Positions 8,068-33,988 of a DNA stretch of 33,988 nt are shown here, piece by piece. The notes under the pieces are model-generated. The model was not told the DNA's origin. It made no database searches and saw only the letters and a program-made list of their open reading frames with translations. Position 1 is the first letter of the stretch; the number at the start of each line of letters is the position of its first letter. The position numbers and the translations under genes were made by a program. The stretch lies in the sequence record OM401714.1; one strand, 5' to 3'.

Positions 8068-8091
8068 CATATACATAATATTATGTATATG
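8068..8091. promoter_or_regulatory. Perfect 24-bp palindrome (putative late-gene operator)
   Basis: CATATACATAATATTATGTATATG. Confidence 0.75.
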
Positions 8092-8129: not shown

Positions 8130-8149
8130 TATACATCATATTATGTATA
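8130..8149. promoter_or_regulatory. Palindromic operator directly upstream of the MCP BRE/TATA
   Basis: TATACATCATATTATGTATA. Confidence 0.75.
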
Positions 8150-11762: not shown

Positions 11763-11786
11763 CATATACATTATATTATGTATATG
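11763..11786. promoter_or_regulatory. Palindromic operator
   Basis: CATATACATTATATTATGTATATG, between divergent genes. Confidence 0.75.
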
Positions 11787-14037: not shown

Positions 14038-14055
14038 ATACATAATATAATGTAT
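14038..14055. promoter_or_regulatory. Palindromic operator
   Basis: ATACATAATATAATGTAT, about 10 bp from the TTTTAAA of the minor virion gene. Confidence 0.7.
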
Positions 14056-15705: not shown

Positions 15706-15792
15706 AACTTTTATGCTTGTATTTTTTTACATAAAACAATTTTTACTTTTACAACAACATTTATAATTTTATAATATACACATAATAATAAT

Positions 15793-18700
15793 ATGAGTTT
15801 CCTCTTAAATCTTGGAGATTTAGGAACATTTTTTTCAGATGAGCTAACAGCATTAGAACAATTTACAAATTTCTTAAGTTCTGATTTTATAAACTTTTTT
15901 AGTACTGTAGTTAATGATATTGAAAATGTTGTAAGTTTCTTAGGTCAAGCAATTAGCGATATTCCTACTTTTATGCAAAAAATTGCTAACAATTTCTTAA
16001 CTGTTTTGCAGAATTTTGTACAAACTGCAATTCCAGTAGTAAGTGGATTTTTAACATTTCTTGAACAACAAATTGTAAATGTATTTCAAGATTTATCTTC
16101 TTTAGCTTCTACATTTATAAATGATGCTTATTCATTTTTCCAAGATGTTGTTAATGTATTTTCACAAATAATAAGTGTTGTTGTGCAAGATTTTCTAAAT
16201 TTCGTTGGTCAAAATATGAAACATATTAGTTCTTCAATTTCGCAAATTACACAATTTCTAACGCCCTTTATCGCACCTATTACAATTGGTAAATTTTTGC
16301 CAACAATAATAGACAAATTAGCTGAAATTCTTCCAGAAGTTGAAATTGATTTAGCTCCAGTTGGCTTAGGTGGAAAAATTCCAATTAACTTTGGAGAAAT
16401 TGTAAAAGCGTTTGCGGAAACTAGTGTTGATTTTCTAAATGAAGTCAGACAAGAAATTCAAGTTACACTTAAAGAATTTATAAAAGAACCATTTATTTCA
16501 GATTTTAAAATTACTGCGAGAGAAATATTTAATGAAATTGGACTTGGAGATTTACCATTTGCAGATCCTCCATTTGTACAAATTGCAAAATGGGTAGGTG
16601 CAAGATCATTTTCTGAAATTAAAGATCATTTAAGAGAAACAATTCTATTAACTGGATTTCCAGCATGGTTTACGGACGCTTATCTAGAATCTCCAGTTGA
16701 TGATTTCGTGCCAAGAAATCCACTTTTTAAACCAGTTAGTATAAGAGATGTAATTTTAGCTTCTCAATACGGAATTGTAGACTTTAGTGCAGTTTCTCAA
16801 TACGCTGAAAATAATTTAATAACTCCAAAAACTGCTAAATTAATGTATCAAAATGAAACTGCTAGATTATTACAAAGAGCAGTAGAATTAGGAATTAGAC
16901 AATTCGTTATTTCTCCAAATGAAGCTTATCAAGAAATAATAAATAATATAAATTTAGCTGGAAAAGACTTATATCTAAAAGTTTTCACTTTAGAATATAA
17001 TTATTCAGTTCAAAGAATTGTTAGACAATTTTTAAGAACACTTTTAAGTCGTGCCTTAACCAATTTTGGAAGACCTTATATAGATTTAAAGTTTTTAGAA
17101 TCTACAGTTCAAAAATTATTTAAAGAACTTAATTATCCTGAAGAAGTTCAAAATGTTTTTAACATTATGATAGAACAATCTCAAATTGTCTACACTAATC
17201 AATTACTTTTGACACAATTAGAACAACTTACAAGATTAGGAATATTTGATGAAAAGAAAGTGAGAGAAATACTAAAAGCTAATAATTTTAATGAACAACT
17301 TACATTAACAATTTTGAATTATGAACTTCAACATGTACAATTACAGTATATCTTAAAAGAATTTCAATTTAAATTACAAAATTACATTATTAGTTCAAAA
17401 GATGTGGAAAAAGAGTTAAAACATTTAGGCTTTGATTCTTCTATAATTTCTGAAGTCATATTTGAATATCAAACTGCTCCATTAACGAAATATCAAATTA
17501 GCCAAATTGAAAGCTTAGCAAGAAAAGGATATTTATCAGCTGATGAAATTATAAAACAATTACATAGTTTAGGTGTAATTAAAGAATTTGAAGACATATT
17601 TATCACTTATGTAAATCAAGAAATTCAAATATCTTCAATTCTCTCCATTATAAAACAACAATTAAGGAATTTCCTAATAGATTCAAAAACTGTAGAAAAT
17701 GAATTAAAAGCATTAAAAATTAACGAATATTTAATAAACGAAATAATTCAAGAAGAATATAACATAAATATTGCTAAATTGCAATTATCATATTTGGAAA
17801 CTTTAGCTAAGAATTTATACTATGATCAAGCTCAATTGTCTGGAGAATTAGCAAAAATTTTGAAAGATAGAACTGCAATTGATTTATATGCTCAAAAATT
17901 CTATTATGAATATGTATTTCCAAAAATTGTAAATTATTACACACAATTAGCAAGACACGGTATTATTTCTAAGATTTCTAATTTACCAAAAGAAATTGTA
18001 CAATATGAAATTCAACCCGCAATTCAAGTTTTCCAACTCACGACAGAATTAGAATATATAAAATCACTATTAAGAGATCTAGAAATTAAACCAACAGATG
18101 CTATAAATGAATTAGAAAAATTAGGAATGCAAAAAGACTTAGCTACTTTATTTGTACAAACTTATATACCGACATTTTTCAATTTACATACAATTATTCA
18201 AAATATTATTGAAGGTCAGCTTTTCAAAGTCGGAAAAATTCCGATTAACTTAGGAAATGCGGAACAACAATTAAGACAACTAGGAATTCCAGAAAATCAA
18301 ATCAAAGTTTTACTAGAACAATATGCTTCAAGTTTTGGTCTTGAAATTTGGAGAAAATTCTTACCTTCACTTTCTCAAATTGAAACTGCAATAAAGTATA
18401 ACTTTCCAATTAATCAATTAGTTGAATATTCATTTATACCATCTGAATTTCTAAATCTTTATGCTAATTTATATCAACATGAATTAGTAGGACAATATGT
18501 GCAATCTTTGAGAAGTGAATATATTCAACTTCTCACCTATGGAGTGCAAAATATACAATTAGAAAGTTTGATGAGACAATATGGAATTAATGATGTTTTC
18601 TTAAACGTTTTCAAATTATCAGCTCAAATTAGAAAATTATTAATGGCTTATCAAGAGCTTTATATCACGCCATCTAAAGCGTTATCGATTAGTGAATATT

Positions 18701-18995: not shown

Positions 18996-19015
18996 TATAC
19001 ATAATATTATGTATA
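18996..19015. promoter_or_regulatory. Palindromic operator
   Basis: TATACATA-ATTA-TATGTATA with perfect 8-bp arms, upstream of the 566-aa gene. Confidence 0.75.
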
Positions 19016-20765: not shown

Positions 20766-22304
20766 ATGTCTTCAACTTACTGCGTTCAATTACCAGAAAA
20801 TCTTTTATTATTATCTATGACCACAGTAAATCCTATAAATTTTACATCTTTGCAATTTTCATTAAGCGTAAATTCGCTAGTTATTTTTCTATTTTCAAAA
20901 TATCCTTTTAATGCCGGTTATTATAATAATTTTTGTGTTAATGCTGATGAATTTGGATTTGCACAAGTTGGTCAAAATTTCAATATAGATTTATCAAATT
21001 ATCAAAATTATTATATGTTAATGTTAATTTATCCACAAGGAATTAGTTTAAAGAGTTTTAAAAGTTGCGTTCCGGCTCAAGGTTTAACTATGACTTTTCA
21101 GAATACAACAATTTCACCAATTGGAAGCGAAACTGTAATTAATAATTTTGATGGTCAAAAAGAAACTGGATTTTGTTTATGTTATGATGGTCAAAGTCAT
21201 GTAATAGGAATTCTATGTAATAATTCAAATTATGTTTCTGCTATTTCATTAGATAATTTAAATAATCAATTATTAATAATGACTTGTCAAGGATTTATTT
21301 ATCAAAATAATACAACTGTAGGATTTATAACACCAAGTACATGCGGTACTTTTGGTTCATATTTAACAGCAGAAATAACATTTATTGCAAATCAATCAGT
21401 TATAGATTTTTTACAAAATAATGGTATCTCTTATAATATTTTATCATCTACTTCATGTCAATCAACTTATAAATTACTTCCATGTACTTTACCATGCAAA
21501 TCATTTTATCAAATTACAAAATTATTATCTCCTCCAACTAAATATTCATTAATTTCCTCAAATTTGTGGAATGAAATTGTACAAGATTTATATCTAACTT
21601 ATAGCGTATTTAAATACATTAGATATTTAACACAATATGCATATTTAGATTATATATATCCTACAATTTTAGACTTTTATAATTTTTATGAGAACTTTCA
21701 ACCATATTCATTTGTTCCGTTATTGTATGCACAAAAAGGAATTCCATTAACTGTAAATGATTTTAACAAATTAATAGATGCAATTATAGAATTAGCAAAT
21801 GAAAATAATATAAAATTGCAAAAAGGACTTTCTTACGTTCAACGTGATCAAGTCGTAAAAGCTAAACAATTTGCAGATATAGTTTATGATGTTAATCAAT
21901 TTCTAACTTTCAATCAAAATCAATATTTTCTATTAGATTGTAATGGATCAATTTTCTCGAATTTATTAAATACACAAAATGCATTTCTAAATGTTATAAT
22001 TAACAATCTAGTAAATTCACTTAATATTCCTTCAAACGTTTATATTAAAAACTTATTAATATATACTTCAAATCAAACTATTTATAATTACGGTGCAATA
22101 GATAAATTAATAATTAATATTAATAACGGCGAAATTTATCTTAATGATAATTCATTTATAAATTATCTACTTATAACTGACAATAATAACAATATTTATA
22201 TAAATGATAATTCAGTAATAAATAATTTAATTTGTATTAGCAATACTGGAACTATAAATATCTCAGCAAATGCAATAATTAAAAATAATCAGTGTAATTT
22301 ATAA
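20766..22304 (+). CDS. Putative minor virion protein (SIRV2 ORF564-like), 512 aa
   Basis: Lies in the fibre operon. Has LWNEIVQDL / DFNKLIDAI motifs and C-terminal Asn/Ile beta-helix-like repeats. Confidence 0.75.
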   Translation: MSSTYCVQLPENLLLLSMTTVNPINFTSLQFSLSVNSLVIFLFSKYPFNAGYYNNFCVNADEFGFAQVGQNFNIDLSNYQNYYMLMLIYPQGISLKSFKSCVPAQGLTMTFQNTTISPIGSETVINNFDGQKETGFCLCYDGQSHVIGILCNNSNYVSAISLDNLNNQLLIMTCQGFIYQNNTTVGFITPSTCGTFGSYLTAEITFIANQSVIDFLQNNGISYNILSSTSCQSTYKLLPCTLPCKSFYQITKLLSPPTKYSLISSNLWNEIVQDLYLTYSVFKYIRYLTQYAYLDYIYPTILDFYNFYENFQPYSFVPLLYAQKGIPLTVNDFNKLIDAIIELANENNIKLQKGLSYVQRDQVVKAKQFADIVYDVNQFLTFNQNQYFLLDCNGSIFSNLLNTQNAFLNVIINNLVNSLNIPSNVYIKNLLIYTSNQTIYNYGAIDKLIININNGEIYLNDNSFINYLLITDNNNNIYINDNSVINNLICISNTGTINISANAIIKNNQCNL

Positions 22305-22781
22305 CTTACAAAATACAAACTCTTTATTATCATCAGTTATGAAAGTCAAAATTGTTCCATATAATTTTTTCAATAATTCAAATTTATTTTCTGTCCATTC
22401 ATGTATAGCTATACAATATTGCTTATATTTTTGTAATTGTGAAAAGTCTAAATTTTTTTCACAACCTTCACAATCCATCACGAAAATATCAGTATCTGGA
22501 TATTCATTACCTTTCCACTCTCCATGAACCTCAACTTTGTCACAAATCTGGAATTCTTTACATACTTTTTCTTTAAATCTCTTGTTTAATTTGTCGCTTT
22601 TTTCATATCCAATTATATGTTTTGCACCTTTTAACAAAAAATATAAAGCCGAACTTCCACAATCATTTCCAACTATTGTAATTGTTTTATTTTCAACTTG
22701 TAATTTACCATAAGCTAAATCAAACTCATGCCAATAACAACATTCTAATTTACAAAAATAATCTTTATAATTTATACTCAT
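22299..22781 (-). CDS. SAM-dependent methyltransferase (SIRV ORF158-like)
   Basis: TIVGNDCGSSALYF motif I, IIGYE motif II, and FVMDCEGCE (FkbM-like). Confidence 0.88.
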   Translation of the reverse strand: MSINYKDYFCKLECCYWHEFDLAYGKLQVENKTITIVGNDCGSSALYFLLKGAKHIIGYEKSDKLNKRFKEKVCKEFQICDKVEVHGEWKGNEYPDTDIFVMDCEGCEKNLDFSQLQKYKQYCIAIHEWTENKFELLKKLYGTILTFITDDNKEFVFCKL

Positions 22782-22786
22782 ATTTC

Positions 22787-22885
22787 CACCACGTCGTTAA
22801 TTCTGAACTTCTGACATGACATTATTAAATTTACAATTGCAAATTTGGACTGGTTCAGCCTTAATTCTGAATTATAGAATTTCAA
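22787..22885 (-). repeat. 99-bp element, copy A (inverted relative to 24633-24731)
   Basis: 73/99 ungapped identity to copy B. Contains TAATTC-A-GAATTA, TATA+TGTCAT and GACGTGGTG. Confidence 0.85.
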
Positions 22886-22898
22886 ATTTGACTTCACC

Positions 22899-23081
22899 TT
22901 AATCAAATAATCTAGCATTTTCTTCATATAATTTGTTACATATTGAATAACAATCATTAACATCATCTGGAAAATCTTTTTTATCACACATTTCATAACA
23001 TTCATGAACAATATTATTTAAACAAACAAAATCTGAACATTCTCTAAATTTTTCTAGAAAATAACTCCACATATTCATCAA
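22899..23081 (-). CDS. Cys-rich acidic 60-aa protein
   Basis: Six Cys (CxxxxC, CxxxC, CxxxC). Starts 2 bp after the stop of the 267-aa gene. Confidence 0.65.
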   Translation of the reverse strand: MMNMWSYFLEKFRECSDFVCLNNIVHECYEMCDKKDFPDDVNDCYSICNKLYEENARLFD

Positions 23082-23083
23082 CT

Positions 23084-23887
23084 TTACACAACCTCAAATA
23101 GAGCATAAACTTTAGCTTTTCCAGTTGCCCATGCATAAATATTACTAGGATTATTCACGTGAATTTCTAAACTATCATTTGGCAAAATTGGAAAATTATT
23201 ATATAATTGATTTCCAATATAAACTATATAATTACTCAAATTCTGTAATATTATTCTAACAGTTTCTATTGACGGGCCGGAATAAAGTGGACTAGGAGTA
23301 GTAGAGACATCTAACTGTAAACCTTCTATAGTTGGCGGACTTAAATATAAAGTTAATTTATTTATTGTATTCGCTAAACCTACAGTTGCTAAATATACAT
23401 AATCAAGTACATATTCTATAGAATTCGCAACAAAATAAATTGCATTTTGTAACGAAATTCCTAATTTTTTAGAAATTGAATTTATTAAAACATAAAATGA
23501 CTCATAAAAGTTCTCAAAATTTTGTGCAAGTGTATTGCTAATTTGATTAGGCAATTTGATAATTGAGTAATATAATTGTTCATTTGAATATAAAATTAAA
23601 TTTATTTGTTGTTGAGCAGTTGAAACAAATCCAGCAATATAAATTGGATCAAGTTCCGTAATGACAGGCTGACCCGCAACATAAATTTCATCATAGAAAA
23701 ATCCAGAACTAGCAGTTATTGAATTCGGAATTGTCAAATTTCCATTTTTCAAAATTGAAGTAACTGCATTTCCACCAGTTTCATACAATTGAATTAAAAG
23801 CAAAGATGCAGTATTCCACATGGAAGATGTTAAACGCTGAAATGGTGAAGCCAACAAACTTGAAATTGAAGCATACGTTATACTCAT
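23084..23887 (-). CDS. 267-aa probable virion-associated protein (SIRV2 ORF269-like)
   Basis: N-terminal LTSSMWNT motif and C-terminal IILQN...PILPNDSLEI beta domain. Palindrome upstream. Confidence 0.8.
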   Translation of the reverse strand: MSITYASISSLLASPFQRLTSSMWNTASLLLIQLYETGGNAVTSILKNGNLTIPNSITASSGFFYDEIYVAGQPVITELDPIYIAGFVSTAQQQINLILYSNEQLYYSIIKLPNQISNTLAQNFENFYESFYVLINSISKKLGISLQNAIYFVANSIEYVLDYVYLATVGLANTINKLTLYLSPPTIEGLQLDVSTTPSPLYSGPSIETVRIILQNLSNYIVYIGNQLYNNFPILPNDSLEIHVNNPSNIYAWATGKAKVYALFEVV

Positions 23888-23929
23888 ATGTTTATATTCT
23901 CAACTTGCAGTAAAAATAAACTCATACCT

Positions 23930-23949
23930 TATACATAATATAATGTATA
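23930..23949. promoter_or_regulatory. Palindromic operator
   Basis: TATACATAATATAATGTATA, between divergent genes. Confidence 0.75.
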
Positions 23950-24018
23950 TGAGTTGATGTAATTGATCTCATAACGATTTAGCAATATTTTAATTTGTCA
24001 TGAACTTGAGAAATAATT

Positions 24019-24624
24019 ATGAAAATCTTTACTTTTGTTGGATATACAAAACATCTTTCAGAATTGGATTTTGATTATGTTACAGTAGATAAAACATTTA
24101 ACGATTTAACTCCAGAATTAGAAGAGAAATATAAAGATAAAATTATCTGGAATGAAACAAATAGTAACATAAGATGGGTAAGAATAGCAAAACAATTACT
24201 AAAAATTCTAGAAATAGCAAAAGATTTAGATGATGATGTATTTGCAATAATTGACAGTGATCTAATTGTTCCAAAATTACGCGATATTGATCCACAAAAT
24301 AAAATTTTGACTTTATGTTATTGGCTATATTACGACTGGGCTAATGAAGTCAGACCATTCTGTTCTGGTACAAATTATATATTTAATAAAAAACATATCA
24401 CAATTTTAGAATCTGTAATTAATGTTTATTTAGAAAAAGAATATTATAAAGAATTTCCAATTGATATATTTCTACATGACCATATTTTACATATAAATGT
24501 TCTAAAACTTGGAACTATTCATTACGTAAAAACTCCAGAAGGAGAAAAGAAAATGGAATTTAAACTAGATGATATTTCACAATTATTTAAACATATTCCA
24601 GAATTTGTTTTAATTAGTTGGTGA
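24019..24624 (+). CDS. GT-A-fold glycosyltransferase, 201 aa
   Basis: FAIIDSDLIV DxD motif. Position before the GT-B gene is as in SIRVs. Confidence 0.8.
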   Translation: MKIFTFVGYTKHLSELDFDYVTVDKTFNDLTPELEEKYKDKIIWNETNSNIRWVRIAKQLLKILEIAKDLDDDVFAIIDSDLIVPKLRDIDPQNKILTLCYWLYYDWANEVRPFCSGTNYIFNKKHITILESVINVYLEKEYYKEFPIDIFLHDHILHINVLKLGTIHYVKTPEGEKKMEFKLDDISQLFKHIPEFVLISW

Positions 24625-24632
24625 GGACAAGA

Positions 24633-24731
24633 ATGAAATTCATTAATTCAGAATTAAGTCCGATCCAATCCAAGTTAAAAATTAAAGATATTAAAATGTC
24701 ATTTTCTAAACTTTGAATTAAGGACGTGGTG
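24633..24731 (+). repeat. 99-bp element, copy B
   Basis: 73/99 ungapped identity to the reverse complement of 22787-22885. Contains the perfect TTAATTC-A-GAATTAA. Confidence 0.85.
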
Positions 24732-24739
24732 ATACAAAT

Positions 24740-25804
24740 TTGACAAATATTATTTATTATGTTTACCCTCAACATCATGATGTCAGCTTCAAATTTGTTG
24801 CCACAGAACATATAAAAATGTTAAGAGAAAAATATACAGTTTACGAAATTCCCTCTTTATCTTTCTATCAATTTACTCCATTTAGATATCCAATTTCTAT
24901 AATTCATCCATTCTTTTATAGTATGTGGCACTGGGGAAAAATAGAATTTTCATTTTTTGAACAATATAGATCTAAAGTTTCTGCAATTATAGGAGTTGAA
25001 GTAGCTGATTCTGATAGAATAGCAGAGAAATTTATTGAATATGGCAATAATTACGCTGACAAAATAATAGTAAATTCTGAATGGTCAGTTAGAGCATTCA
25101 AAAATTCTGGATTAAAAATTCCAATTTATAAAGTTGTACATAATTTCAATTCTAGACTATTGGCAAAAGATAATGAATTAAAACTTGATGATCAAGTGAA
25201 ATATATTGAAAAAGTTAAAAACGAAAAGAAAATAAAGTTAATCTTCATTTCGCTTTGGCATAGTGATTTTAGAAAAGGAGCTGATTTATTTCACACTATA
25301 GCTAAAGAAATACAAAAAGAAAGAAATGATGTTTATTTCTTAGTTAAAAGTGGCGGGCCTAGGACAGATTTTCAAGATTTGAGAATGTTCAATTTCACTG
25401 GAAATACTGATTTTGATAATATAGTAAAGATGTATAGAATATCTGACTTGTATCTCCTAACTTCAAGAGGTGGAAGTTTTGAATTAAACGGTTTAGAAGC
25501 TTTTGTATCAAAAATTCCAGTTATTGCGACAAAAGGCGGGGCATGGGAAGAATATTTTCCATCTCAACTGAAAGATTTATTAGTTGACAGTTGTAGATTT
25601 CCAGATGTTCTTTGGAACAATCCAATTCATATTGGTCAAGGAGTAGAAATGTGCATAGATAAAGCTATAGATAAAATATTAGAAGTTCTAGATAAACTGG
25701 ATGAATATAAAGCGAAAATTGAGGAGAATTATAATTTCTGGTTAGAAAATTTCAGTTATAACGCAGTAAAAAAGCAATTATTTAACGCAATTCAAAAATC
25801 TTAA
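24740..25804 (+). CDS. GT-B glycosyltransferase (SIRV ORF356-like), 354 aa
   Basis: RKGADL and SRGGSFELNGLEAFVSKIPVIAT motifs. TTG start after GGTGA. Confidence 0.92.
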   Translation: MTNIIYYVYPQHHDVSFKFVATEHIKMLREKYTVYEIPSLSFYQFTPFRYPISIIHPFFYSMWHWGKIEFSFFEQYRSKVSAIIGVEVADSDRIAEKFIEYGNNYADKIIVNSEWSVRAFKNSGLKIPIYKVVHNFNSRLLAKDNELKLDDQVKYIEKVKNEKKIKLIFISLWHSDFRKGADLFHTIAKEIQKERNDVYFLVKSGGPRTDFQDLRMFNFTGNTDFDNIVKMYRISDLYLLTSRGGSFELNGLEAFVSKIPVIATKGGAWEEYFPSQLKDLLVDSCRFPDVLWNNPIHIGQGVEMCIDKAIDKILEVLDKLDEYKAKIEENYNFWLENFSYNAVKKQLFNAIQKS

Positions 25805-33569: not shown

Positions 33570-33988
33570 ACTAAATGACAGATTAATTGTAATTTAGGAA
33601 TTTAGAAAATTAGTATTTTTTAGCAAAGTTGTAAAATTATTTGGAAATGTAGAATTAATTGGAACTTAGGAATTTCCAATTATTTTACTTTTTTGCAGAA
33701 AATGATAGATTATTTCAAATTTAGGAAATTAGGAATTTACAATTTTTCTCATTTTTTGCACAATTTACGCAAAATGACAGATTAATTGGAATTTTGGAAT
33801 TTTGAATTTTTTGCACCGCTCCAATTAATATTTGGAGGTGTAGAATTAATTGGAATTTCCAATTTATTGCGAAAGTTGGGAAATTTGCGAAAAAAACGAA
33901 AAAAACGAAAAATATTGGAATTTTCAATTTTTTGCATTAATTGTGAAATTTTCGCAGAAAATGAAAAAAACTACAAATACCTAATTAA
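33570..33988. repeat. Telomere-like / terminal repeat region
   Basis: AATTTAGGAAATTAGGAATTT at 33718-33738 is 20/21 identical to the rudiviral terminal motif AATTTAGGAATTTAGGAATTT. AAATGACAGATTAATTG occurs at 33573 and 33772; TGTAGAATTAATTGGAA at 33648 and 33839. Confidence 0.85.

Follow-up and report, generated by a model that had tools for sequence, protein, structure and literature searches.

Small dispersed regulatory or mobile repeats, such as REP, MITE, Correia and PeSL elements, are well known from bacteria and their phages. MITEs, REP/BIME, IS200/IS605-derived PATE and the Correia elements of Neisseria are about 100-170 nt long, non-coding or nearly so and dispersed in intergenic DNA. 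They contain conserved hairpins, are polymorphic for presence and absence, and can donate promoters or affect mRNA. Phage 'morons' are independent promoter-gene-terminator insertions between two genes. The PeSLs of T4-type phages (Arbiol et al. 2010, PMC2839356; PMC4122927) are short, repeated intergenic modules of promoter and stem-loop that flank small ORFan genes and are found where close relatives differ by insertion, deletion or replacement. For crenarchaeal viruses a literature search yielded no description of a small dispersed regulatory or mobile repeat. Documented for rudiviruses are the GTC element of SIRV promoters, in a passage of PMC5569661 that cites Kessler 2004, and the 12-bp indels, in a section of PMC4390879 that summarises Peng et al. 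2004 and Vestergaard et al. 2008 and presents them mostly as single 12-bp units inside ORFs.

The DNA analysed here, the window, is record OM401714, the complete genome of SIRV isolate V65 (Usarudivirus) with 33,988 bp. It carries two inverted copies, A and B, of an element that belongs to a family of 108-168-nt elements. The family is previously undescribed; neither the V65/V60 isolate paper (three Yellowstone SIRV-like isolates, PMC9319562) nor the SIRV4-11 paper (PMC5454432) mentions the element. In our best reading its closest counterparts are probably the T4 PeSLs or the MITE/REP elements.

Like PeSLs, type I copies of the family combine a canonical promoter motif and a stem-loop in one short repeated intergenic unit. 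Copies also bracket variable ORFans, here ORF58, and mark indel and replacement breakpoints: ORF58/59 lies between two copies in loci L018, L210 and L227 and has one bracketing copy in V65, L226 and L207. Transcription termination by the stem-loop and recombination mini-circles further characterise PeSLs. In contrast to the sigma-70 promoters of PeSLs the rudiviral element has an archaeal TATA/GTC promoter motif, which is located within a hairpin loop. It furthermore adds a translated-looking micro-ORF and Shine-Dalgarno (SD) sequences at both ends, and it differs from PeSLs by its 2-3 copies per genome and its 12-nt length steps.

Size, dispersal, hairpins and presence/absence polymorphism, with multiple dispersed copies and both empty and filled sites, are common to the rudiviral element and the MITE/REP/PATE/Correia group. 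The conservation of sub-terminal hairpins by compensatory change is shared with IS200/IS605-derived PATE/REP elements. Yet the rudiviral element has no recognised cognate transposase and no terminal inverted repeats, its ends GTGAGGNCAAAT... and ...ACGTRGTGA being direct, not inverted; internal complementarity is confined to the 7-nt TTAATTC/GAATTAA. There is no clear target-site duplication beyond GTGA, the element resides in a 34-kb virus genome rather than in a cell, and it is always operon-oriented between co-directional genes. The 300-nt insertion of ORF58 plus element between genes that abut in relatives resembles a moron with its own expression signals. Unlike morons, copy B comes without a cargo gene, and what is conserved is the repeated linker.

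Two inverted copies in the V65 genome

A repeat search of the window returned inverted arms at 22787-22898 and 24620-24731 (112 nt, 73%). The original prediction, made from the sequence alone, had described a 99-bp inverted pair at 22787-22885 (minus) and 24633-24731 (plus) with 73/99 ungapped identities. This count was exact, and extension by 13 nt upstream, reaching GGTGA, gave 82/112. By chance, Markov shuffling of the 8 kb around the locus (30 replicates) gave at best 55-62/99 for a 99-nt inverted match. A covariance-model (CM) scan of the V65 genome with filters off detected exactly two copies, A and B. Copy A is located between the small Cys-rich ORF and the SAM methyltransferase, copy B between ORF201 and the GT-B type glycosyltransferase. 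The length of copy A, 117 nt, is counted from its GGTGA through the base preceding the methyltransferase ATG. The features of the locus are:

22782..22898, minus: element copy A, type I, CM score 115.5 bits
24620..24739, plus: element copy B, type I, CM score 112.9 bits
22778..22885, minus: micro-ORF A, TTG start, 35 codons
24633..24716, plus: micro-ORF B, ATG start, 27 codons
22857..22893, minus: 5' stem of copy A, AGTC (22890-22893) with GGCT (22857-22860)
24625..24661, plus: 5' stem of copy B, GGAC (24625-24628) with GTCC (24658-24661)
22799..22846, minus: copy A, imperfect 3' hairpin with arms at 22831-22846 and 22799-22814
24672..24719, plus: copy B, imperfect 3' hairpin with arms at 24672-24687 and 24704-24719
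22787..22795, minus: GACGTGGTG(G) at the 3' end of copy A, Shine-Dalgarno-like for the methyltransferase (ATG 22781-22779)
24723..24732, plus: GACGTGGTGA at the 3' end of copy B, Shine-Dalgarno 7 nt upstream of the glycosyltransferase TTG (24740)
22299..22781, minus: SAM-dependent methyltransferase (MT), downstream of copy A, phrog_5108, E = 2e-83
24740..25804, plus: group-1 (GT-B) glycosyltransferase (GT), downstream of copy B, PF13692/PF00534, phrog_2170
22899..23081, minus: small Cys-rich accessory ORF (ORF58), 57-60 codons, start at ATG 23072 or TTG 23081
23084..24624: ORF267 and ORF201, the core of the divergent block that separates the copies
23084-23887, minus: ORF267
24019-24624, plus: ORF201

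The element is built in a fixed order: a 4-7-bp stem enclosing the micro-ORF start codon is followed by an imperfect hairpin and a terminal SD. Every sub-motif that had been listed in the original prediction recurred at identical offsets in copies A and B, namely the palindrome TAATTCAGAATTA at 24, GAATTAA at 31 and 95 (64 nt apart), TGTCAT at 77 and GACGTGGTG at 103. Likewise, GGTGA is followed after 8 nt by the start codon in both copies, TTG in A and ATG in B. The longest exact run common to both arms was 15 nt, TAATTCAGAATTAAG. In copy A the loop of the 5' stem, 29 nt in length, contains the start codon and the palindrome (22862-22874), as does the corresponding loop of copy B (palindrome at 24644-24656). 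The promoter-like sequences TAATAATGTCAT (22816-22827, minus) and TTAAAATGTCAT (24691-24702, plus) are situated in the loops of the 3' hairpins of A and B, respectively. The TGA of micro-ORF A overlaps the methyltransferase ATG (ATGA), while 23 nt separate the stop of micro-ORF B from the glycosyltransferase start codon.

Several known or conceivable motifs did not explain the sequence. As a genome-wide operator the palindrome TTAATTCNGAATTAA gave 3 matches with up to two mismatches versus 2.9 expected; it is not a general motif, merely part of the element. The published SvtR consensus ATnnTTCAAnAnnnnnAAAATG misfits copy B in a comparison by eye, and the rudiviral ITR motif AATTTAGGAATTTAGGAATTT occurs near the right terminus (33591, 33718) and is absent from the element.

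A family of junction elements with 12-nt length steps

Searches of GenBank, IMG/VR and metagenome rudivirus loci with nhmmer and the CM yielded at least 29 distinct copies at at least eight gene junctions. The element was found only in Yellowstone rudiviruses (Usarudivirus), with 2-3 copies per genome. In IMG/VR a loose pattern gave chance matches only, and a stricter pattern recovered rudivirus contigs. No copy was detected by blastn in the Icelandic SIRV1/2/3, Stygiolobus, Acidianus or other rudiviruses, and none in Sulfolobales when 185,579 species genomes were scanned once with a pattern that detects exact GGTC/GACC-type copies only. Type I has a length of 9 x 12 = 108 nt, and V65 copies A and B are diverged members of it. 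The view that the pair arose by a local duplication within the V65 genome had to be dropped: the nearest non-orthologous relatives of copy A are located at other sites in other viruses (80-81% identity vs 73% to copy B).

Occupied sites are ORF201>GT (B site), ORF58>MT (A site), ORF267>ORF58 and ORF566>ORF512 (J site; 120-nt insert in V3, 168-nt insert in SIRV10). Further copies are found 3' of the MT stop, 3' of hjc (V60), antisense at ORF32/33 of SIRV11, and in loci L192 and L193. The copy at the ORF201>GT site of L193 (B2_L193) clusters with the SIRV11 ORF32/33 copy with 100/98 support. Empty and filled alleles at the A, B and J sites were aligned base by base. Because the flanking genes abut with gaps of 2-7 nt in most relatives, both V65 copies are insertion alleles. 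The A site is filled in V65, V3 and V60 only and empty (taa-TC-atg) in SIRV4, 8, 9, 10 and 11. The B site is filled in V65, V3, V60, SIRV4 and several metagenome contigs, empty with a 7-nt gap in SIRV1, 3, 8, 9, 10 and 11, and also without element in SIRV5 and SIRV7. The insertion allele with copy A measures 300 nt; copy A makes up its 3' part and ORF58 its 192-nt cargo half. Copy B is a 108-nt insertion allele that reaches from the ORF201 stop (TGA inside GGTGA) to the glycosyltransferase TTG start.

The element begins immediately 3' of GTGA, often the stop codon of the upstream gene plus its SD, and ends with ...GAATTAAG(G/C)ACGT(G/A)GTGA about 7 nt upstream of the downstream start codon. 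Since it ends in a fresh SD, the operon junction is rebuilt after insertion. The 3' GGTGA, proposed earlier to merge into the next ribosome binding site, indeed looks like the SD of the next gene, with the 7-nt spacing also seen in relatives without the element. A GTGA direct repeat of 4-6 nt, doubling as SD/stop, flanks the inserts at the B and J sites. This target rule fits B and J and not clearly the A site, where the empty allele is without a pre-existing GTGA.

All length alleles at element junctions differed by multiples of 12 nt, with gains and losses of 12, 48, 72, 96, 108, 120, 156, 168, 192, 300 and more. The alleles were 0, 12, 108, 120 and 156 at the B site, 0, 120 and 168 at the J site and 0, 48 and 96 in the divergent region; the A site had two baselines (0 or 18), each with an additional 84-384 in 12n steps. 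All indels of the 5-kb region were at element sites or 12n units. Gain and loss in 12-nt multiples places these alleles in the class of rudivirus/lipothrixvirus 12-bp indels. In contrast to the single units inside ORFs typical of that class, structured modules and a gene cassette in intergenic DNA follow the 12-nt rule here.

Promoter motif, stems and micro-ORFs

The combination of TATA and TGTCAT, named as a promoter in the original prediction, corresponds to the canonical promoter motif of the virus. W7GTCAT occurred 23 times in the V65 genome versus 7.5 expected, a number reached in 0/100 shuffles. W7-TGTCAT is present upstream of most first genes, mostly 20-45 nt before the ORF start, and the GTC of other window genes lies at 21-51 nt. 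In the two copies an A/T-rich TATA-like box is directly followed by GTC, as in SIRV promoters. The GTC precedes the MT start codon by 39 nt and that of GT by 42 nt, a distance comparable to that of bona fide promoters, and the predicted leader contains an SD. In relatives without the element no W7-TGTCAT was detected within 150 nt of GT or MT. AATGTCAT was invariant in 19/19 type I copies, and the loop with the promoter motif is the most conserved block of type I, above the stems. As MT and GT gain the same promoter class, the earlier notion of a 'co-regulation cassette' appears fair, judged from the motifs. Promoter supply is not the common function of the family, because type II copies are without the promoter motif. 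A scan for sigma-70 promoters and intrinsic terminators remained at chance level and is irrelevant to the archaeal host.

Selection at the DNA or RNA level, as suspected originally, agrees with compensatory changes in two stems and with homologous copies being read in two frames. The 5' stem had at least 4 bp in 26/29 family copies with at least seven complementary sequence variants. In the 3' hairpin 86% of cells were paired vs 16-63% with the partner slid, and the covariation score of 0.275 vs 0.152 was exceeded in 0/500 shuffles. G·U outnumbered A·C 55 to 25, indicating that it is the sense strand that folds. Folding of the V65 copies was no better than that of shuffled sequence (z = -0.03 and -1.3); type II (z = -4.1) and family-2 (z = -2.9) copies alone folded better. 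Rfam 15 gave no family match, only a sub-threshold snoRNA chance match elsewhere in the region.

The micro-ORF was open over 24-55 codons, in two frames, in 23/23 co-directional junction copies and dead, with the start lost or stops gained, in 8/8 copies without a downstream co-directional gene; these counts, like the covariation, are drawn from related sequences and thus represent few independent events. It seems that the act of translation is kept rather than the peptide. The longest micro-ORF has 55 codons (SIRV10). The dN/dS-like ratio of 0.38 in the micro-ORF frame was not distinguishable from 0.34 in the off-frame control, so the peptide may still be functional. The peptides matched nothing in Pfam or PHROGs.

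A proposed portable junction cassette and its alternatives

We favor, as the somewhat more probable case, that the dispersed structured junction elements of Yellowstone rudiviruses are a portable intercistronic promoter/SD cassette, with copies A and B as diverged type I members. The element would keep the downstream gene translatable by its own SD and a translated-through micro-ORF. It would give both modification-enzyme genes an internal promoter of one class and thereby uncouple MT and GT from ORF267 and ORF201. Elements may spread and be lost between co-infecting viruses via illegitimate or microhomology (GTGA) recombination, possibly of the kind that yields the rudiviral 12-bp indels. The original interpretation is retained with respect to DNA/RNA-level selection, promoter, SD and co-regulation, and not supported with respect to local duplication, inversion, gating and a leader-peptide or riboswitch role.

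A rather unlikely alternative is a selfish, non-autonomous element of the MITE/REP/PATE kind, in which promoter and SD only make insertions tolerable and have no regulatory role. The hairpins would be recognition structures for copy-paste in single-stranded DNA with insertion 3' of GTGA. Movement could be due to the rudiviral Rep, which Oke et al. in 2011 reportedly found to be an HUH enzyme, to a host TnpA of the IS200/IS605 type, or to template switching in the course of strand-displacement replication. Copies at at least eight sites with empty and filled alleles, their cross-site kinship, covariation in two stems, the G·T bias towards the sense strand and GTGA at both the left flank and the right end of the B and J inserts would suit such an element, as would the extensive ssDNA intermediates of rudivirus replication noted in PMC5062984. 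However, terminal inverted repeats are missing, no transposase was found in these genomes or in the block, the limited pattern scan showed no copy in host genomes and the A site lacked a pre-existing GTGA. Moreover, 2-3 copies per genome are few, and the 12-nt length steps point to a general indel process, not to a transposase. Should the micro-ORFs encode real small proteins (27-55 aa), the element would amount to a tiny gene, equipped with an SD of its own, that has been duplicated and shuffled. In line with this, every junction copy has GGTGA, 7-8 nt and a start codon, the frame is open in 23/23 of them although about 9% of random codons are stops, and substitutions within the frame-2 subfamily are conservative. 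Yet homologous nucleotides are read in two frames into unrelated peptides, the stop position ranges over 24-55 codons, dN/dS is no better than in the off-frame control and no protein family or homologue was found. In addition, copies 3' of the MT stop keep the nucleic-acid structure with the start codon lost, though still expressible, and we regard small-protein genes as distinctly improbable.

The cassette is also to be weighed against a cis-acting RNA that tunes ORF58/ORF201 read-through into MT/GT, be it a leader-peptide attenuator, an RNA switch or a processing/stability hairpin. The sense-strand structure with G·U pairs, a 5' stem that sequesters the start codon, in family 2 also the SD, and the strong hairpin of type II copies at convergent gene ends (z = -4.1), reminiscent of a 3'-end stabiliser or terminator, are features of such an RNA. 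Nevertheless Rfam contains no match, alternative mutually exclusive structures were not found, and type I conservation peaks in the promoter-motif loop rather than in the stems. The 'gating' and the leader-peptide or riboswitch role proposed at the outset obtained no specific support, as the peptide is not conserved family-wide, has no conserved regulatory codons and arises from two unrelated frames of variable length, and the V65 copies are thermodynamically unremarkable; we consider this reading very unlikely. Least of all do we expect an invertible switch, whose chance we put close to nil, in which recombination between the inverted copies would flip the 1.7-kb block and swap the operon reading into MT or GT. 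The arms are inverted and have the 15-nt exact run. But no inversion was seen in about 40 related loci; gene order and orientation were constant in every locus spanning both genes, and most relatives have one copy or none at the two sites. Identity between the arms is only 73%, ORF58, ORF267 and ORF201 have no recombinase family match, and there is no recombinase gene in or adjoining the block. The inverted orientation of the arms follows from the two divergent operons, nothing more.

An extension of the cassette reading, which we offer as speculative and doubtful, is a rudiviral cassette-exchange system. Here the junction elements of 108-168 nt (n x 12) would be promoter/SD linkers and recombination handles at once, moving themselves and cargo such as ORF58 between the junctions of co-infecting viruses. 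Movement might use ssDNA hairpins that arise in strand-displacement replication and might involve the viral HUH Rep, and the 12-nt quantum might tie to the unexplained 12-bp indels, perhaps to the 12-bp-per-capsid-dimer repeat of the virions.

The family would provide a concrete mechanism for operon rewiring in rudiviruses: MT and GT, whose coupling to upstream genes is strict in most relatives, gain their own promoter-type motif in V65. It also shows a possible route by which small ORFans are inserted with the translation of their neighbours unbroken. The junction copies with open ORFs and the non-junction copies with dead ORFs constitute a natural test system for archaeal translational coupling and internal promoters, and the strict 12-nt allele steps make the 12-bp indels of rudi- and lipothrixviruses, a puzzle of long standing, directly testable at defined loci.

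Two observations concern the block itself. ORF58 is without annotation in the GenBank record; it has no Pfam or PHROGs family, and its homologues occur in 6 hot-spring metagenome clusters only. The divergent promoter region of ORF267 and ORF201 contains an 18-bp palindrome, ATACATAATATAATGTAT, at 23931-23948 and TTAATTTGTCAT at 23990-24001.

The inverted pair and its alleles

Isolate V65 of SIRV (OM401714.1; Rudiviridae, Usarudivirus) from Yellowstone has a linear, complete genome of 33,988 bp with about 25% G+C. The annotation comprises 12 CDS only and leaves out most ORFs, among them ORF201, ORF566 and ORF512. The region studied contains:

22299..22781 (-), SAM methyltransferase gene (MT; phrog_5108)
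22782..22898 (-), copy A of the element, before MT
22899-23081 (-), ORF58, unannotated, Cys-rich (C-x4-C ... C-x3-C ... C-x3-C), 57-60 codons
23084-23887 (-), ORF267
24019-24624 (+), ORF201
24620..24739 (+), copy B, before GT
24740..25804 (+), group-1 glycosyltransferase gene (GT; PF13692/PF00534, phrog_2170)

ORF58 is accessory: it occurs in only some Yellowstone rudiviruses and in six metagenome protein clusters, and has no family in Pfam or PHROG. GenBank labels ORF267 'putative protein acetyl transferase'; its sole PHROG match was phrog_7221 (function unknown), and no Pfam match was detected.

The original prediction of an inverted, duplicated element in front of two modification-enzyme genes was confirmed in full. 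The ungapped identity of 73/99 between 22787-22885 and 24633-24731 was reproduced exactly, and a repeat search yielded arms of 112 nt (22787-22898 and 24620-24731; 82/112, 73%). When the surrounding 8 kb was shuffled 30 times, the top inverted match over 99 nt had 55-62 identities. Both copies carry GGTGA, 8 nt, a start codon and the TAATTCAGAATTA palindrome at identical offsets, and two GAATTAA 64 nt apart, TGTCAT and GACGTGGTG at matching offsets. The micro-ORFs, short frames inside the element, have the predicted 35 (A) and 27 codons (B), and the next genes are MT and GT. The inverted pair is real and of greater interest than a neutral duplication of a promoter.

Alignment of both junctions across SIRV1-11, V3, V60 and metagenomic rudivirus contigs showed that copies A and B are both insertion alleles. 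The ORF201/GT junction is empty in SIRV1, 3, 8, 9, 10 and 11 with a 7-nt gap (e.g. tggtga/TATTTAA/ttg); in SIRV5 and SIRV7 the element is absent and the annotated GT start overlaps ORF201. V65, V3, V60, SIRV4 and several contigs have the filled site (115 nt), where an insert of 108 nt starts directly 3' of GTGA and ends with ...GACGTGGTGA. Because removing exactly 108 nt from a SIRV4-type filled site gives the 'empty' site of SIRV11, GGTGAGGACAAATTG, precise loss occurs, not gain alone. The ORF267/MT junction is a 2-nt gap or an overlap in relatives and holds a 300-nt insert in V65, V3 and V60, made up of ORF58, the small Cys-rich frame of 57-60 codons, and copy A. The SIRV2 ORF176/ORF356 junction (L002 3500-3630) has an 82-nt 'gap' without element; the ORF201 homologue ends there at an early stop (...gagaaataa), and the remainder of the 'gap' is still homologous to the 3' end of ORF201.

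A dispersed family of structured elements

An HMM and a covariance model were built from the copies and used to search GenBank, IMG/VR and metagenome rudivirus loci. The rudivirus relatives, proposed originally as the place to look, hold at least 29 distinct copies in at least eight different places.

Sites of the element (L numbers: related rudivirus loci from GenBank or metagenome contigs)
ORF201/GT
ORF58/MT
ORF267/ORF58: L018, L227, L226, L188
ORF566/ORF512: V3, 120-nt insert; V65 empty (gtga/TGTAAAA/atg)
ORF566/ORF512: SIRV10 (NC_034625.1), 168-nt long form, L272 1788-1962, between ORF35 and ORF36; SIRV9, same element 3' end
Directly 3' of the MT stop, convergent gene end: L018, L226, L227, L038, L029
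3' of the MT stop, 72-nt remnants: SIRV5, 8, 9, 10
After hjc: V60
Between ORF32 and ORF33, antisense: SIRV11
Two further contexts: L192, L193

With the covariance model V65 has exactly two copies and V3 three. No copy was found in the Icelandic SIRV1/2/3 and the other rudivirus genera searched, nor in prokaryotic genomes by a pattern scan sensitive to GGTC/GACC-type copies only.

The consensus reads GTGA-GGNCAAAT-ATG-GAATTCTTTAATTCAGAATTAAG-NCCGAAC...[3' module]...GAATTAAG(G/C)ACGT(G/A)GTGA. The 5' stem forms between the 4-7 nt that follow GTGA and a partner strand made up of the G of AAG and the bases after it. It has at least 4 bp in 26 of 29 copies and occurs in at least seven different complementary versions (GGTC/GACC, GGAC/GTCC, AGCC/GGCT, TGATGC/GCATCA, GTGATAC/GTATCAC, TGGTGC/GCACCA, GTAC/GTAT); the loop is always 29-30 nt and contains the start codon and a small palindrome. 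The imperfect 3' hairpin was recovered unaided by RNAalifold. In its 21-pair structure 86% of cells were paired, compared with 16-63% when the partner was slid. The test for compensatory changes suggested with the original prediction gave 54 double-sided changes vs 19 expected in this hairpin, with a covariation score of 0.275 vs 0.152 (0/500 shuffles). G·U outnumbers A·C 55 to 25, thus the sense strand is the folded strand. There are two 3' modules differing by exactly 12 columns: type II contains an additional inner helix and is strongly folded (z = -4.1), and type I, to which copies A and B belong, has in its place a loop with an invariant AATGTCAT. Folding of the V65 copies was unremarkable with z = -0.03 (B) and -1.3 (A). 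Taken together, we are highly confident of the family, its polymorphism and its structure.

Several copies deviate in form. The SIRV10 long form holds an unannotated 55-codon ORF ending 3 nt before the ORF36 ATG, and its internal insertion of about 48 nt recurs at the ORF201/GT site of contig L018. In V60 (OM401713.1, L268 2500-2790, about 15777-16060) a start-less type II copy after hjc/ORF76 is followed by a second, partial 5' module copy (ATGGAAACAAGTTTAGAATTTTTTTGTTTAGAATTAAG...). A 24-31-nt 5'-module fragment, GGTGAAATTCTTTAATTCAGAATTAAAG, lies across the ORF23 stop codon at the ORF23/ORF22 junction of SIRV9 (NC_034620.1, L007 1499-1531), and likewise in SIRV8; it is probably the remnant of a further insertion site.

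Open frames and promoter motifs

All 23 distinct copies between co-directional genes have an SD-preceded start codon and a frame open for 24-55 codons; each frame stops within the 3' arm, shortly before the next start codon, or overlaps that codon. In the 8/8 copies not followed by a co-directional gene the start codon is gone or early stops have arisen, and the stems are kept. The micro-ORF may encode a functional peptide. The dN/dS-like ratio was 0.38 in frame, no better than the off-frame control (0.34), and the peptides matched no protein family. Two subfamilies read homologous sequence in different frames via a compensated 1-nt shift, and their peptides (M[KE]FFNSEL...QSK... vs MKFLNFRIKHQIAQIWNCKF...) are unrelated. 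The property retained would rather be openness, i.e. translation through the element, for which translational coupling or avoidance of polarity may be the simplest reason.

The motif W7GTCAT (consensus TAAATATGTCAT / TATATTTGTCAT) occurs 23 times in the genome vs 7.5 expected (0/100 shuffles); most copies, the one in the ORF201 promoter at 23990-24001 among them, lie 20-45 nt ahead of an ORF start. It matches the SIRV promoter signature 'TATA box + GTC' as quoted from Kessler 2004 in PMC5569661, with a conserved core, TGTCAT, longer than the published 'GTC'. GTC precedes the start codon by 39 nt in copy A (MT) and 42 nt in copy B (GT), so that a transcript would have a short leader containing GGTGA. 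In relatives that lack the element, the 150 nt upstream of MT or GT contain no such motif. These data support, but do not prove, a role of type I copies as internal promoters. In one L227 copy the 5' half runs straight into the genuine promoter of ORF201.

An 18-bp palindrome, ATACATWATATWATGTAT, is present at six sites of the window (0 expected): 8071-8088, 8131-8148, 11766-11783, 14038-14055, 18997-19014 and 23931-23948. All lie upstream of or between divergent genes, mostly structural ones (MCP 8199, ORF566 19058, ORF267 23887). The palindrome is a putative second promoter/operator class, distinct from TATA+TGTCAT. One site is within the block between copies A and B, upstream of ORF267; because this upstream region is of the palindrome class, copy A would give MT the promoter class of ORF201/GT. 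We slightly favor the view that the element acts as a portable promoter/SD-linker.

Origin of the pair and step size of the indels

The tree of copies is not sorted by insertion site: the ORF201/GT copy of L193 and the ORF32/33 copy of SIRV11 form one group (support 100/98). Copy A is closer to its nearest non-orthologous relatives at other sites (80-81%) than to copy B (73%). For these reasons the arms are not a local duplication but two old members of one family that were placed independently, and they are inverted only because they are located in two divergent operons. Inversion of the block as a regular switch is essentially refuted, since gene order and orientation do not vary among the related loci that cover MT to GT, the longest exact run common to the arms is 15 nt, and family searches detected no recombinase encoded between the copies. 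Most related loci have one copy or none at the two V65 sites. A 'gating' of the enzyme genes was likewise not supported. Functionally, the element comes closest to the PeSL of T4-type phages, a 'mobile regulatory cassette' in which a promoter and a stem-loop recur between ORFan genes and mediate modular shuffling (PMC2839356). Next in similarity are MITE, REP, PATE and Correia elements; the terminal inverted repeats expected of a MITE are missing from the element. Rfam has no family for it, and no prior description was found in papers on these viruses or in literature searches. We know of no transposase for the junction element, and any specific mobility mechanism is doubtful.

Indels between V65 and its relatives in 20766-25804 measured 12, 60, 72, 96, 108, 120, 300 and 480 nt; the full list of multiples of 12 is 12, 48, 60, 72, 96, 108, 120, 156, 168, 192, 300, 384 and 480. 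Such multiples are near-universal in this region (loci L003-L030, L200, L226, L227, L272), in coding and intergenic sequence. Anchor to anchor, the alleles are 0/12/108/120/156 at ORF201/GT, 0/120/168 at ORF566/ORF512 and 0/48/96 in the divergent promoter region; at ORF267/MT the series starts from one of two baselines, 0 or 18, to which 84, 192, 276, 300, 324, 360 or 384 is added. The ORF58 cargo of 192 nt is 16 x 12. The rule clearly fails in two cases, an 18-nt step where ORF267 meets MT and a 10-nt indel at 25789; small irregular gaps in the most divergent contigs, L026 and L030, are perhaps alignment noise. These lengths match the mechanistically unexplained '12-bp indels' described for rudi- and lipothrixviruses (PMC4390879) and extend this rule to whole modules. 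The nucleoprotein repeat in the virion of the related AFV1 is 12 bp (PMC5517147); a connection with the 12-nt quantum is speculative.

The conserved rudiviral terminal motif AATTTAGGAATTTAGGAATTT, not found near the left genome end at up to 3 mismatches, occurs twice near the right end with 1-2 mismatches, at 33591-33611 and 33718-33738.
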